Shown here: positions 1 through 5,151 of the stretch, piece by piece
How positions within the stretch are numbered: position 1 is the stretch's first letter
Layout: every line of letters begins with the position of its first letter
Assembly: GCA_009103225.1 (NCBI GenBank)
Contig: RHPI01000638.1
Span: 434,001-498,000, forward strand
Length of the DNA: 64,000 nucleotides
Origin: Chlorokybus atmophyticus
Taxonomy: Eukaryota; Plantae; Mesostigma and Chlorokybus algae
Direction of reading: 5' to 3'
Made by a program: the position numbers and the translations under genes
Notes under the pieces: generated by a model
What the model was told of the DNA's origin: nothing
Databases searched by the model: none
Seen by the model: only the letters and a program-made list of their open reading frames with translations

Positions 1-1350
1 GGCGGCATTTCCATCAAATCGAAACCGATTGGCCAACAGAAGGTAAGCGCCTGTGGCGCCTGCAAACACCACGTGCTCCGCTGCTACAGCCTGCGCACAA
101 GTGCCTAGTTGCGCCAACTTGGCGGCAGTAACACAAGCTGGCCCAGAGTTACACTGGACACTGATGCTTGAAACGGTGGATATGTGTTTGTTGGCCACTT
201 TTCGTGTACCACATGGAGACAACTTAGCACAAACCCATGCATGGCTGCAGGCCATTGCATGCTGCTCACAGTTGGATCCGTATCAAAGCTCGAGGCAGTG
301 TGTACCAACACAGATTTCTGTGTAACAGCTGGTTGTGGCAAAGCCACACTGCCCTAATCGCCCGATAGCAAGGTGGCATTTTAATTTGCAGCGTACCTGG
401 AAAAGGAGAGGCAACGACACTGTGGCACCCGCAAGTGCAATCTGAAGAATCCATTTGAAAATGCCGGTCTGCATTGACGCGCAGAAATTAACAGATAGCA
501 CGCAGCACTGTACTCCACCGGGAACATGACACGTGTCCATCAGTCCCACCACTAGTTAATTGTGTACATATACATTTTGGTATCAGGGAGACACGCATGC
601 ACGGTCACGCACGCATGCATTGATAAGTGTTAAAGCGTATACATGGCCACAGCACATTCATGCACACCAAGGAGGCGTGCATGAAGCAACTGCAGCGCGC
701 TGTGACAAAGCTGCTACTTTGTCACATGATGCCAAGGTCTTGACTACATGCACGCCAGCTTGGAAGCAAGTAAGAAAGGGTGAGCACGTTGAGGCAGCAT
801 GCATAGTTGTTGAGAGGCAGTCTCACGCAGCTACTTTGGGGACCGAGTTCTGCAGCTGGCAATGACTGTGTGCGATTGTAGAATGACACGCCGAGTAATG
901 TACTTAAGAAGGCAAGCATACCTGTGGCAGTGCGGCCATGCCACCACGTGTAGTCGAGCTGGTGCTTGCCTCCTCGGCACTGGCTGGAGAGGAGGAGGAG
1001 GAGGAGGAGGAAGAAGAAGACGAGGAGGAGGAGGCAGAAGAAGATGCTACTACACAGCGTTTTCGCAGTTTTGGCCGAGGCCTTTGCCTGCCTACGAACG
1101 CGGGACGGGCAATGCCAGCTGCTCCTGCTTCAGCACCAGGCCGTCTGCAAGAATAACAGGCAGCACCAGCACCAGCACCAGCAGCACCTGCACCTGCAGC
1201 AGCTGGGCCCCGCAGTGCGGCGGCGGTGCTGCAAGACGGCGCAAGGAGCAGCACCGGCGCCGGCCGAGCACCAACCATGTCCACGGCAACTGAACGCTTT
1301 AACAAGCACGCGTTTGTCCACGACGACGACAGCGCTGCTGCCGCCGCCAA
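1..1350 (-). CDS. Putative plastid-targeted protein of unknown function, spliced, runs off the window start
   Basis: ORF 904..1350 begins MAAAAALSSSW..., an Ala/Ser/Arg-rich transit-peptide-like segment, and ends at a CAG|GTATGC donor at 922/921. Further exon-like blocks occur at ~400-470 and ~260-352. Downstream exon structure is unresolved. Confidence 0.5.
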
Positions 1351-1465
1351 CCACCTCGGCTACCCTAAGGAATCCATTGATGCTGCAGCAGGCAAAGCAG
1401 CGATAAATCACGAAACGGAAGAAAGAGCAAAAAGTGAGTGGGAAGCAAGCTTAGAGCGAGGCAGC

Positions 1466-3366
1466 ATGGCGACCATGGGGGCGGCAGCGTCGATGGCGTC
1501 GTTGCCGCCGGAGTGCCTGGCTGCGGTGCTTGTGCGACTGGACGCCGTGTCGCTGCTGCGCCTCGAAGCCACCTGCAAGTGGCTCCGTCAGCAGGCGAGT
1601 TTTAGATTGGTTCCTTGTTTGCTTCCACCCTTTCGTCCCTTGCTTGCTTGCTTGTCAAGAAGCAGCTGTTGCTGAGCGTTAGCAAGTGGGTCTCTGGTGT
1701 TGATCACCAAGGCTGACAGTTCGCGTGCAGCTTGCGAGCGTGTGTTTTGTGCCAGGCGCTGCGGAAGTGTTGACTCGCCTAAGCTTGTTGCCAGGTGCAA
1801 GACAGTTCGCTATGGCGTACGCTGGCTGTGCACCACTTTGGCACAGCTGTGTTGGAAGGCAGGTACGACGCATTCTCAGCTGCATGTTCACAACTACAAC
1901 AATCGCAGATGAACTGGCATGCATGGCATCAATGTCGTTGGAGTTCTGTGCACAAGTCGTCTATAGTGGTAGAAGGCTTTGAAGTATGCTCAGCAAGCTT
2001 ACTGGCCTTGTTGTACGCATCCTATTTGCCGTGAAATGTAGAACTGCAAGCTGAGAGTGAACTACGCAACCAACATCGCCACATTTACTGCAACTGTGTT
2101 AGCTTGTCGTGTATGAAGCATTACATGACACGCTGGCAATAAAAGTACTTGTGCGTCGTATCATCTGAGTATAGTTGTCGCCTTTCAGCGCTTACTTGCT
2201 TGCCAGCATGAGTTTGTGACCGTGCACTGGTTTGCAAGAAGTTGTACTGCCATTCACAGCTACTGGTGCATACAACCTTGCGCAGCAGTTGCATACCACA
2301 CTCACATGTGGGCTTGTGCTTTTGAGCAGTGCAGGAAACTGCAAGACGTTGCACACCTGTGCGTCACGCACAAGTCAAAGCAACATTGAGTGCAGTTGGC
2401 GGCAGTTCTATCTTCATAGAGTCTCACATTGTACAGCCTTGCGAACAACATCACCACTGGACTTGATACAGGAGCACTACACTGATCCGTAAGTACCAAA
2501 AAAGGCGTCTCATGACGCTTGATTAATGAACATATTCTTGACGACTGGGTACCATTTTCACGCTGGTGTTGTTCTTGACAACAGGTGGCAGCACATAGCA
2601 TGCTGCCTGCTCTGCTCACGTACCAGCGGTGGCCAAGGAGTGGGAGATGTCATCACGCACATTCTAGAGGCGCATCCCAATGCTACGGCAGGTATTGGCA
2701 ATGCTCGCTTTGCTTGCACGCATACCGCCTGCTTGTACTCACTTGCTAGCCACTTGCTTGTATGCACAACACATTATGTGTATGCACAGTCATACACGCA
2801 AGCAGGGCTTGATCTGCATCATGTGCTGATTGTGCAGTGTCACACAGTCCTTCAAGCGGATGTAGACACTTTGCGTGGGACTTTGGACATGCTGGGCTTG
2901 CAAGATGTGCGCATGAAAGCTTTGCAAGCCATGTCGCACTCTTTTCTGCATGACGACTGGACCGACCCCACCCAGTTTCATGGGTGCGTGCTGGTGCACA
3001 TGTTTTCACAATGGTACGCATGTGATGAGTTGCCTAACAGGTGCGGCGCTTTCATCAGTGAGAGCTGGAGGATATTTTGCTGTGGCGATACTCGCAGCAT
3101 AACAAATCCAACACTGGCAAAGGTTTGAGCTGCACCTTGATTTATTCATGACACAAGTGGTCTACTGTCTGTTTCTCACTATTTTTCTGTATGCACAGTA
3201 TTGCCGGTGGCTCCATCACAAAAAGCAAAGGCCTGATGTCTGCTTAGCAAGCACGAAGGCAGCAACCTCACATGCAGTCAGGAAGAGGCCGCCTGTGACT
3301 CGCAGCAAAGGCACTGCACCAGTGAGACGAAGCCAACGGTTGCGCAGCTGTTGCTTGCAGTCATGA
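1466..3366 (+). CDS. F-box domain fused to an MBD4-like (HhH-GPD) DNA glycosylase domain
   Basis: Exons 1466-1594, 1795-1862, 2396-2488, 2585-2691, ~2848-2982, ~3041-3122 and ~3197-3366 splice in frame. Product: MATMGAAASMASLPPECLAAVLVRLDAVSLLRLEATCKWLRQQVQDSSLWR (F-box) ...SPLDLIQEHYTDPWQHIACCLLCSRTSGG...HPNATAVLQADVDTLRGTLDMLGLQDVRMKAL...FHGCGAFISESWRIFCCGDTRSITNPTLAKYCRWL. This is colinear with the MBD4 catalytic domain (SPFNLVQE..DPWKLL...NRTSG...LGL...LHGIGKYGNDSYRIFC...KYHDWL). Confidence 0.85.
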
Positions 3367-3481
3367 CTTTGCACAATTATTGTACCCATAGCAGCAATTT
3401 TAATAGTTCGATGTGCTAGACAGGAGTAACTGTAATGTACAATAAATAGGGCTAAGAAAGTTACTGTAGTTTTGGGGGTTA

Positions 3482-4793
3482 TTATGGTGAAGAAAGGGGA
3501 GATGTTAGCGGCTTCATGGGTGACACATATGGCCGAGTGGGGATTGCGCGGTCTGATGATAACCGCATCTTCAGCCGATCTGTGCGCAGCTGGAAGTCGT
3601 CCAGATATCGGAAAAAGTCCTCATCTTTGTGTCCTCGAGCAGGTTCGCTGTAGGTGGACCTGCTATCTGAATAGACACATGATGGTTTAGAACAAGCACA
3701 ACGCGCATGTTGCATGTATGCAACAATGAGAGCCTTGCAAAGCGCGCCCACAGTGCTAACGAGCCAACCCACAGTATCAGCTTTGACAACTGCCATGCCA
3801 CTATTTCTTCTCTATGACAAAACCACATGGCAGCACACACGCCTCTCGTGTGAACATTTCTTGCAGTCAACATGTACCTAATGTGGATCTTCGCGCTGTT
3901 GGTGAGCGCGGACTCGCTGTGACGGGCGATGCCCCGCCGCTGATGCTCGAGCCCGCCGCCGATCCTGGCCTTGGCGACCACGCTGATAAAGACGATGCAC
4001 GCGGCGTGGAGGACAGTGCTGCGCGTGGGGACACAAGCGGCCGAGGGCGTGACGCCAGTCTTTGCACCAAGTCCTGAAGGTATCATGCAAGAAAGGTGGT
4101 GTTTAATGGTTGTAAACTGTTGACACACCTGTGCTTCCTTAACATGTGCTCATTGTCATGCACGAAATACCAATGTGTTTTCTGATGCTCTTACGTCAAG
4201 CTCTTTGCGGTAATGTCGGCCGCTCGTGTCGCCGCTGGCAGTTTCACCTAAAGAGTCTCCCTGCTTGTGTGACAGCGATACCAGTTCAACGACCAATTGG
4301 TAGTCCGCTTAGAAACAGGGATAAAGGTGAGTTCAAAGTACATACGCTTCCAGAGAGAGCGAGAGAGAACAAGCAGTATCTTTACAACCAGCACACTGAT
4401 ATAATGACTAGCAAATTTTGTGTATACCTGCCTTGTGCAGAGATAGTGATAGTATTTAGGTTGCGAAGTTTGTCTTTCACATAATTTCACAAACAGCGTA
4501 CGCACCTGAGCGGCCGCCAGCTGTTTCTCCAGCCTACCCCTCTCAGCCTGGCTGTGCTTCAGCTGGCGCTCCAAGTCCGCCACCTTATCTTTCAGGAGCG
4601 CCACCTCGCATTCCAACTCCAATACTCTGACAGAGGAAGCATGGGTCTTGCCACCCTCTCCTCCTCCTCCCGCCACCGCCGCCGTGGCTGTAGCCGAGTG
4701 CGGCGGCGGCGACAGGCTGCTGAACCTGTACTCGCCTCCCCCAACGCCACTGCCACTGCCACTGCCGCCGCCAGCCCCAGACCTTAGCCCCAT
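3482..4793 (-). CDS. Small coiled-coil protein of unknown function (3 exons)
   Basis: Starts MGLRSG and continues ...RVLELECEVALLKDKVADLERQLKHSQAERGRLEKQLAAAQ, then a Ser/Pro-rich exon at ~3870-4075 and a last exon ...DEDFFRYLDDFQLRTDRLK...SP*. Splice junctions are GT-AG. Confidence 0.65.
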
Positions 4794-4825
4794 ATGAGCC
4801 ACCGACCACCCCTGCATCGCACGGC

Positions 4826-4886
4826 CCGGCCTGGTCGCAGGCCAGGCCAGGCCAGGCCAGGGGCCGGCCCAGGCACGACCAGGCCA
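4826..4886. repeat. CCAGG pentamer array inside a GGCCTGGTCG/CGACCAGGCC inverted repeat
   Basis: Read directly from the sequence, in the divergent promoter between 4793 and 5152. Confidence 0.8.
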
Positions 4887-5151
4887 GAACGCGCCTTAAA
4901 CTTCCGGACCAAAACAATGGCGCAATCTGGATCCGTAACAGCCAAGTTTATTAAACCGGATTCGTTGCGGACCCGTCTGATCAGGCTCAGAAGTGCACAA
5001 CGACTTCAAAAATTCTTACCGCCAAAAGGCTCGTGAGCAGGCATTGCTGTCGCTGCCGCCGGTGCCGCCGCTGTGGCGGACCACGGGGACTTGGATGTGG
5101 GGATTAGAGAGCATGTTGTCGTAGGGGACTACTCGTTGGCGCCCTGACACG

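Follow-up and report, generated by a model that had tools for sequence, protein, structure and literature searches.

In the 64,000-nucleotide (nt) stretch of the Chlorokybus atmophyticus genome analyzed here (GenBank assembly GCA_009103225.1, contig RHPI01000638.1, positions 434,001 to 498,000 of the forward strand; hereafter the window), a plus-strand gene at positions 1466-3366 joins F-box exons and MBD4-type DNA glycosylase exons in one transcript. This fusion is not peculiar to the Chlorokybus gene but represents a conserved, uncharacterized eukaryotic family. The gene is a member of this family, in which an F-box is followed by an MBD4-type helix-hairpin-helix (HhH) domain and a basic tail, and we consider it fairly probable that the Chlorokybus copy serves as a lesion reader and an adaptor of the SCF (SKP1-CUL1-F-box) ubiquitin ligase.

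The F-box and glycosylase exons are spliced into one mRNA

RNA contigs of three runs were aligned to positions 1000-3700, and the spliced transcript was carried by two of them, X1 (2013) and X2 (2021), which derive from different studies. The X1 and X2 contigs define six junctions: 1594/1795, 1862/2330, 2488/2585, 2691/2848, 2983/3041 and 3122/3199. A single X2 contig, record 6, crosses all six junctions, extending between position 1541 in the F-box exon and position 3668 in the 3′ untranslated region (3′UTR); therefore, the F-box and glycosylase exons lie on one mRNA. A preliminary description of this DNA, made from the sequence alone, had proposed the fusion, and the contigs of both studies bridge the two sets of exons instead of assigning them to separate mRNAs.

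The same description had spliced seven in-phase exons into a protein of about 260 amino acids. Seven plus-strand exons are indeed present, and the set as given translates to 260 amino acids including the F-box string quoted there, but the RNA-supported protein is 282 amino acids long from the ATG at 1466, or 345 amino acids from an in-frame upstream ATG at 1277. The proposed junction 1862/2396 does not occur in the RNA contigs, which use 1862/2330 instead. The true acceptor at 2329/2330 is located 66 nt upstream of 2396, is likewise in phase 2, and inserts 22 in-frame residues (SAGNCKTLHTCASRTSQSNIEC) into the linker relative to the 2396 model. In the family alignment, the linker holding these residues differs in length among members. 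A minor 2396 isoform may exist, as rare variants drop out of contigs. The first joint was reported at 1591/1792 with four ambiguous bases, for which the sole splice-like placement yields a GC..AG intron at 1595-1794. The RQQ/VQD join made by removal of this intron fits the family alignment without a gap.

As for the translation start, frame 2 is open from 1157, and the ATG at 1277 is the start in the Joint Genome Institute (JGI) model. RNA contigs cover 1054-1358 and 1446-1595, one of them starting at 1446, and none covers 1359-1445. The ATG at 1466 is favored because the F-box of most homologs begins within about 20 residues of Met1.

The sole nearly identical protein found with a stop-free stretch of the locus is JGI Chlat1 model 2512 (P0001, 315 amino acids, annotated by Pfam as F-box-like), which deviates from the RNA in three places. 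For intron 1, the donor of the model is a GT at 1610 and not the GC at 1595, so that ASFRL is added within the F-box; intron 5 (57 nt) is kept in the model, by which the HhH motif gains 19 residues; and the model reads into intron 6 and ends at LAKV, so that exon 7 with the last helix and the tail is lost.

The protein combines an F-box with an MBD4-type domain

Sequence and structure searches were performed with stand-ins for the spliced protein, namely P0001 with its three errors, the stop-free stretch 2523-3125 reading through introns 4 and 5, and P0002, the nearest relative from Botryococcus. Local sequence comparisons used the correctly spliced Chlorokybus protein.

Exon 1 alone scores 25.2 bits (E = 1.4e-5) with the Pfam F-box-like family (PF12937), for which the cut-off is 24.3. 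Among 40 relatives, Pfam assigned F-box-like to 22 (best E = 1.4e-13), F-box (PF00646) to 20 and HhH-GPD to 15. The fold of the N-terminal region was assessed on an AlphaFold model of P0002 residues 1-90 (predicted local distance difference test, pLDDT, 84) and not of the Chlorokybus protein. Nearly all of the top 50 matches in the PDB are SKP1-bound F-box proteins, including FBXO31, FBXO3, Fbw7, Skp2 and SLY1, with root mean square deviations of 1-3 Å over 40-77 residues; the KDM2B/PRC1.1 structure 5jh5 is also among the matches. The F-box assignment of the preliminary description is thus borne out by the Pfam match of the gene itself and by the fold of its relative, and the F-box of the Chlorokybus protein would bind SKP1 within an SCF complex.

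Both sequence and fold identify the C-terminal domain as an HhH domain of the MBD4 type. The translated exons match structures of the MBD4 glycosylase domain colinearly, and the spliced Chlorokybus protein is 30-36% identical over approximately 132 amino acids to frog and fish MBD4, quinoa MBD4L and another Chlorokybus protein, P0099. P0002 matches human MBD4 over the whole domain (E = 1.5e-21) and shares 39% identity with the spliced Chlorokybus protein over 272 residues, from the F-box through the tail. When P0002 was modeled by AlphaFold from the family alignment, a confident single body resulted (pLDDT 87, predicted template modeling score, pTM, 0.81), whose C-terminal part superimposes on MBD4 crystal structures with TM scores of 0.85-0.89. 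In this model, the F-box appears to be rigidly joined to the HhH domain by conserved helices. The MBD4-like domain had been described as complete, which holds for the fold and the recognition residues but not for the chemistry, as the catalytic Asp is replaced by Asn (see below). Pfam found no methyl-CpG-binding domain (MBD) in the Chlorokybus protein. A feature search of the ESM Atlas gave just weak F-box and HhH leads, and a fold search of the Atlas found nothing beyond HhH-GPD clusters.

The fusion is conserved in green algae, Amoebozoa and a sponge

Word-indexed homology searches found little; the family emerged from an exhaustive HMMER search over 1.84 billion representative proteins. This search yielded 473 matches, many of which aligned from the F-box through the glycosylase domain. 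Local profiles recognized an N-terminal F-box region in 48 of 109 representatives whose glycosylase domain is nearly complete. The members occur in green algae, Amoebozoa, one sponge, and metagenomes or environmental eukaryotes. The named green-algal members are trebouxiophyte and chlorophycean (Botryococcus, Coccomyxa, Chlorella, Elliptochloris, Enallax, Flechtneria, Hariotina, Scenedesmus and Monoraphidium), the amoebozoan members are from Planoprotostelium, Luapelamoeba and Vermistella, and the sponge member, from Corticium candelabrum, lies on a 5.7-Mb contig. Relatives of other lineages, including complete open reading frames (ORFs) derived from transcriptomes, show the same domain order. 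One further sequence, P0003 (XP_075264804.1), is filed under the acoel Convolutriloba macropyga on a 31-kb contig and groups among green-algal sequences; it may derive from an algal symbiont and not from the animal.

In a maximum-likelihood tree of the glycosylase domain, a single branch separates 31 F-box-bearing sequences from 25 canonical ones, which include plant MBD4L, vertebrate MBD4 and Chlorokybus P0099 (ultrafast bootstrap 98; Shimodaira-Hasegawa-like approximate likelihood ratio test, SH-aLRT, 90). A larger quick tree agrees, and the few rows without an F-box on the F-box side are mostly truncated at the N terminus. The Chlorokybus terminal branch in the quick tree is 0.83, compared with 0.33 for the nearest relative. 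Chlorokybus and Monoraphidium each carry one gene of either type (P0001 and P0099, and P0171 and P0187, respectively); therefore, the F-box and canonical types are old paralogs, presumably with different jobs. P0099 (JGI Chlat1 834, 509 amino acids) has a canonical glycosylase domain with the catalytic Asp intact. Its match to zf-4CXXC_R1 is weak, at 21.6 bits where the cut-off is 22.7, but the zinc finger is clearly matched (2.6e-8) in a relative with this pairing, P0127.

The Chlorokybus copy lacks the catalytic Asp and keeps the recognition residues

The numbering of mouse MBD4 (Tyr514, Asp534 at Tyr514+20, Lys536 and Leu537) places the catalytic Asp in PED-HKL (PMC3458566), which aligns with ITN-PTL in the Chlorokybus protein. 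This column is Asp in 45 of the 46 F-box-clade members and in 61 of the 63 canonical sequences, the Chlorokybus protein alone having Asn within the F-box clade. In exon 6, which includes the Asn codon, the genome and the RNA contigs of both runs are without differences. The Asp of GNDSY, aligned to ISESW here, was considered as an alternative catalytic residue, which would have made the change Asp-to-Glu; the residue numbers in PMC3458566 rule this out.

The equivalents of Gln449 and of the Arg468 finger, whose roles in recognition have been described (PMC12073362), are present in all 46 clade members, the Chlorokybus protein included. MBD4 Tyr540 contacts O2 of thymine or of the flipped pyrimidine; this position is Phe in the Chlorokybus protein and 41 of the 46 clade members and Tyr in 53 of the 63 canonical sequences. 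Across the domain, the Chlorokybus protein keeps 29 of the 34 columns conserved at ≥80%, its five departures comparing with a clade median of two and a maximum of nine. The catalytic position is the sole invariant column that it breaks.

The D534N mutant of MBD4 (D560N in the human protein) is inactive on every substrate but binds G:T, G:U and G:5hmU with dissociation constants (KD) below 30 nM and holds the flipped nucleotide intact (PMC3458566). Because its catalytic Asp is Asn, the Chlorokybus protein is probably unable to excise T or U. The excision activity that the preliminary description gave for MBD4 and MBD4L should not be carried over to this copy, which is probably better read as a lesion binder. 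We read the conservation pattern as that of a domain under constraint that would have lost its chemistry and kept its binding.

A nucleosome-binding motif is suggested in the C-terminal tail

Past the last helix, the family proteins have a basic, disordered tail, and many carry RRSxRL-like sequences near the end. The strict RRSxRL motif was found in 8 of 42 F-box-clade tails, against an expectation of 0.2 after shuffling of the tails. Three N-terminally truncated members of the F-box clade have it as well, and no member of the canonical clade does. In the Chlorokybus protein, PVRRSQRLRS fits the P-x-R-R-S-x-R-L core and matches the HMGN core RRSARLSA and PPRRSSRLT of Dsup, although nothing is shared with these proteins beyond the short motif. 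The arginines of the HMGN2 and Dsup motifs anchor in the acidic patch of the nucleosome formed by H2A-H2B, as resolved by cryo-electron microscopy (PMC12487698). By the resemblance of the motif, the tail would bind this patch. According to a 2025 paper, Dsup is so far the sole non-vertebrate protein shown to use an HMGN-like motif for binding nucleosomes; a 2026 paper reported an HMGN-like motif in yeast Dot5. If the binding holds, the tail motif would mean that algae, amoebae and sponges, too, have nucleosome binding of the HMGN kind.

A proposed role at damaged bases and its alternatives

We propose that the F-box docks on SKP1-CUL1, that the HhH domain would flip out and hold T or U opposite G through the conserved Gln and Arg finger, as suggested by their conservation and by MBD4 structures, and that the basic tail would dock on the H2A-H2B acidic patch. 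Together, the three parts would bring an SCF ubiquitin ligase to chromatin sites where a base is mispaired or deaminated. The Asp-bearing majority of the family should also excise the base, whereas the Chlorokybus copy would bind only and leave excision to its canonical paralog P0099. The route from mismatch recognition to ubiquitination via SKP1 and SCF, and the targets of that ubiquitination, are what we infer from these parts. A bolder version, that the family constitutes a new class of SCF substrate receptors with a glycosylase domain and an acidic-patch anchor for ubiquitination at lesion nucleosomes, and that the Chlorokybus protein is a natural Asp-to-Asn substrate trap, is possible but doubtful.

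Several points weigh against the role of lesion reader and SCF adaptor. The Chlorokybus F-box only just exceeds its Pfam cut-off, the family-invariant Trp of KWG is Phe in this protein, and the matches to the F-box fold are weak in their E-values (0.02-3), which is normal at a length of about 45 residues. The modeled structures belong to the Botryococcus relative. F-boxes may function outside SCF complexes. The RRSxRL motif is short, and its strict form occurs in just about a quarter of tails. Furthermore, the Phe that replaces Tyr540 across the clade may give it a base specificity different from that of MBD4, and Asn could be tolerated at the catalytic position if another carboxylate substitutes, such as the Glu found here at the Asp543 position.

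The main rival, which we hold to be unlikely, is that the F-box is a built-in turnover handle through which SCF auto-ubiquitination sets the abundance of the protein itself or its removal from DNA, and not an adaptor for other substrates. F-box proteins are commonly auto-ubiquitinated, and with the catalytic Asp kept in 45 of 46 members, the family overall looks enzymatically active. Moreover, MBD4 clings to its product with single-turnover kinetics (PMC3458566), so that a means of taking it off would serve a purpose. However, this reading leaves the catalytically dead Chlorokybus copy without an obvious role, and that copy is nevertheless expressed and correctly spliced and keeps 29 of the 34 conserved positions, and the rigid coupling of the F-box to the domain in the P0002 model and the nucleosome-type motif suit a substrate receptor at least equally. 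It is quite unlikely that the Chlorokybus copy is instead a decaying relic that has drifted since the loss of the catalytic Asp and reads no lesions. The change at the only fully conserved column where the protein departs, the five departures against a median of two, the long terminal branch and the presence of a canonical paralog in the same genome would all fit such decay. On the other hand, the ORF runs unbroken through the seven exons, RNA of two studies shows each of the six introns removed, other members depart at up to nine columns, and the protein still has its Gln and Arg finger, the glycines of the HhH, the core of the F-box and its tail motif.

An active glycosylase with a rewired active site seems improbable, slightly more so than a relic. 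The Glu at the Asp543 position would be the candidate carboxylate, lying on the HhH helix by the active-site Tyr/Phe, one helical turn from the Tyr540 position. Mouse MBD4 D534N, however, is inactive on all substrates despite its native Asp at the Asp543 position, and Glu also occurs there in Asp-bearing members such as P0034, so the two changes are uncoupled. That the fusion is a gene-model artefact in which two adjacent genes were wrongly joined is extremely improbable. The three errors of the JGI model and the RNA gap at 1359-1445 could raise this suspicion, but each of two independent runs has single contigs that reach from F-box exon 1 into the 3′UTR, and the same domain order recurs in about 48 relatives of other lineages. 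Two separate genes, a mis-assembly and a pseudogene had also been considered, and the RNA contigs together with the conservation speak against them.

Gene structure and flanking features

The features of the gene are compiled in Table 1.

Table 1. Features of the F-box/MBD4-type gene, with positions in the window.
Feature	Positions	Strand	Basis
Possible N-terminal extension or 5′ leader, in frame with the coding sequence	1277..1465	+	JGI start ATG 1277
Exon 1 from ATG 1466; F-box starts at 1499 (SLPPECL...)	1466..1594	+	Pfam, RNA contig 1446-1595
Intron 1, non-canonical GC-AG, 200 nt	1595..1794	+	Joint in X1 and X2
Exon 2: end of F-box (VQDSSLW) and conserved helix equivalent to W..A..KWG..V	1795..1862	+	RNA, alignment
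Exon 3: 22-residue variable linker, WRQFYLHR, start of glycosylase domain (SPLDLIQE, Gln449 equivalent)	2330..2488	+	RNA, alignment
Exon 4: DPW...CSRTSG with Arg468-equivalent arginine finger	2585..2691	+	RNA, MBD4 match
Exon 5: central helices (MLGLQDVR...FLHDDW)	2848..2983	+	RNA, MBD4 match
Exon 6: helix-hairpin-helix (GCGAF, Phe at Tyr540 position) and catalytic position (ITNPTL)	3041..3122	+	RNA, alignment
Codon AAT, Asn at catalytic Asp position (human D560, mouse D534)	3105..3107	+	Alignment
Exon 7: last helix (YCRWL), basic disordered tail, stop codon 3364-3366	3199..3366	+	RNA joint 3122/3199
HMGN/Dsup-like motif PVRRSQRLRS, 13 residues from the C terminus	3319..3348	+	Motif scan
3′UTR, in overlap with the 3′ end of a convergent gene on the minus strand	3367..3668	+	RNA contigs

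Introns 4 (2692-2847, 156 nt) and 5 (2984-3040, 57 nt) are multiples of three in length and stop-free in the coding frame, and their retention would give in-frame insertions; no retention of either was seen in the RNA contigs. An alternatively spliced exitron has been reported for plant MBD4L, according to a citation in PMC9266487.

At site 3402 in the 3′UTR, A is shared by the genome and run X1, and the C of run X2 is probably a strain polymorphism. The convergent minus-strand gene is located at 3500-4900, and the RNA contigs of the F-box gene run past 3668 and join to approximately 3881 over a minus-strand GT-AG intron; either the two convergent 3′ ends overlap or an unstranded assembly merged them. 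Upstream of the gene, there are low-complexity repeats, namely GAG/GAA repeated at 985-1045 and, at about 1150-1200, repeats of the CAGCAC type. RNA is present at 1054-1358, and additional ATGs are found at 1044 and 1112. This part may be a long 5′ leader that holds upstream ORFs, or it may belong to another transcript, separate or divergent.

Relation to known systems and significance

The Chlorokybus domain shares the HhH fold with MBD4 (human O95243, mouse Q9Z2D7) and MBD4L (Arabidopsis Q0IGK1), is about 30-36% identical to their domains, and has the same Gln (LIQE) and Arg finger (RTSG) that read the flipped T or U and the orphan G. Unlike these proteins, it has neither an MBD nor a long N-terminal region and carries the F-box directly before the domain. 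The F-box clade is separated by the 98/90 branch and bears the signatures CCLLCSRTSG and GCGKF with Phe for Tyr540, and the Chlorokybus protein further differs by its basic tail with the HMGN-like motif and by its catalytic Asn. It thus falls outside the canonical MBD4/MBD4L group, to which P0099 of the same genome belongs by type. The engineered mutants MBD4 D560N and D534N (PDB 4OFA, 4EVV and 4EW0) carry the identical Asp-to-Asn change at the same position, but the Chlorokybus change is natural and stands in the background of another subfamily with Phe at the Tyr540 position.

An F-box is combined in one chain with a DNA or chromatin module in the F-box DNA helicase FBH1 and in KDM2A/B (FBXL11/10). 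These proteins resemble the Chlorokybus protein in pairing the F-box with a domain that acts on or reads DNA and set a precedent for bringing SCF or SKP1 to chromatin; they differ in that the DNA module of the Chlorokybus protein is a base-flipping glycosylase domain, a module for which the search of open-access literature gave no example among described F-box proteins.

The preliminary description did not recognize the architecture as described. A full-text search of open-access literature found no paper describing the pairing of an F-box with an MBD4 or HhH-GPD glycosylase domain, an earlier mention elsewhere being possible, but the pair is no one-off, as the proteome search recovered it in 48 representatives. 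F-boxes are nowhere mentioned in a 2022 review of non-catalytic domains in DNA glycosylases. Among the reviewed UniProt entries, none spans the two domains; matches come from the glycosylase part alone, namely MBD4 of human and mouse and MBD4L of Arabidopsis. The protein belongs to the glycosylases, among which its accessory domain is new, and equally to the F-box proteins, among which its recognition module is new; both parent kinds are already known. What was first described is extended by the natural Asp-to-Asn copy and by the HMGN-like tail.

DNA glycosylases are regulated in trans by ubiquitin and SUMO, and F-box proteins select their substrates by WD40, LRR and other domains. If our reading is true, the family would provide a new class of accessory domain for glycosylases and a new class of recognition module for SCF ligases, with the apparent nucleosome anchor as a third element, and would link one damaged base to ubiquitination in its vicinity by a direct route that can be tested. 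The proteins are small (about 260-350 amino acids) and occur in culturable green algae and amoebae, so the family should be biochemically tractable. The natural Asp-to-Asn copy of Chlorokybus makes a ready test of whether binding and catalysis are evolutionarily separable in such domains.

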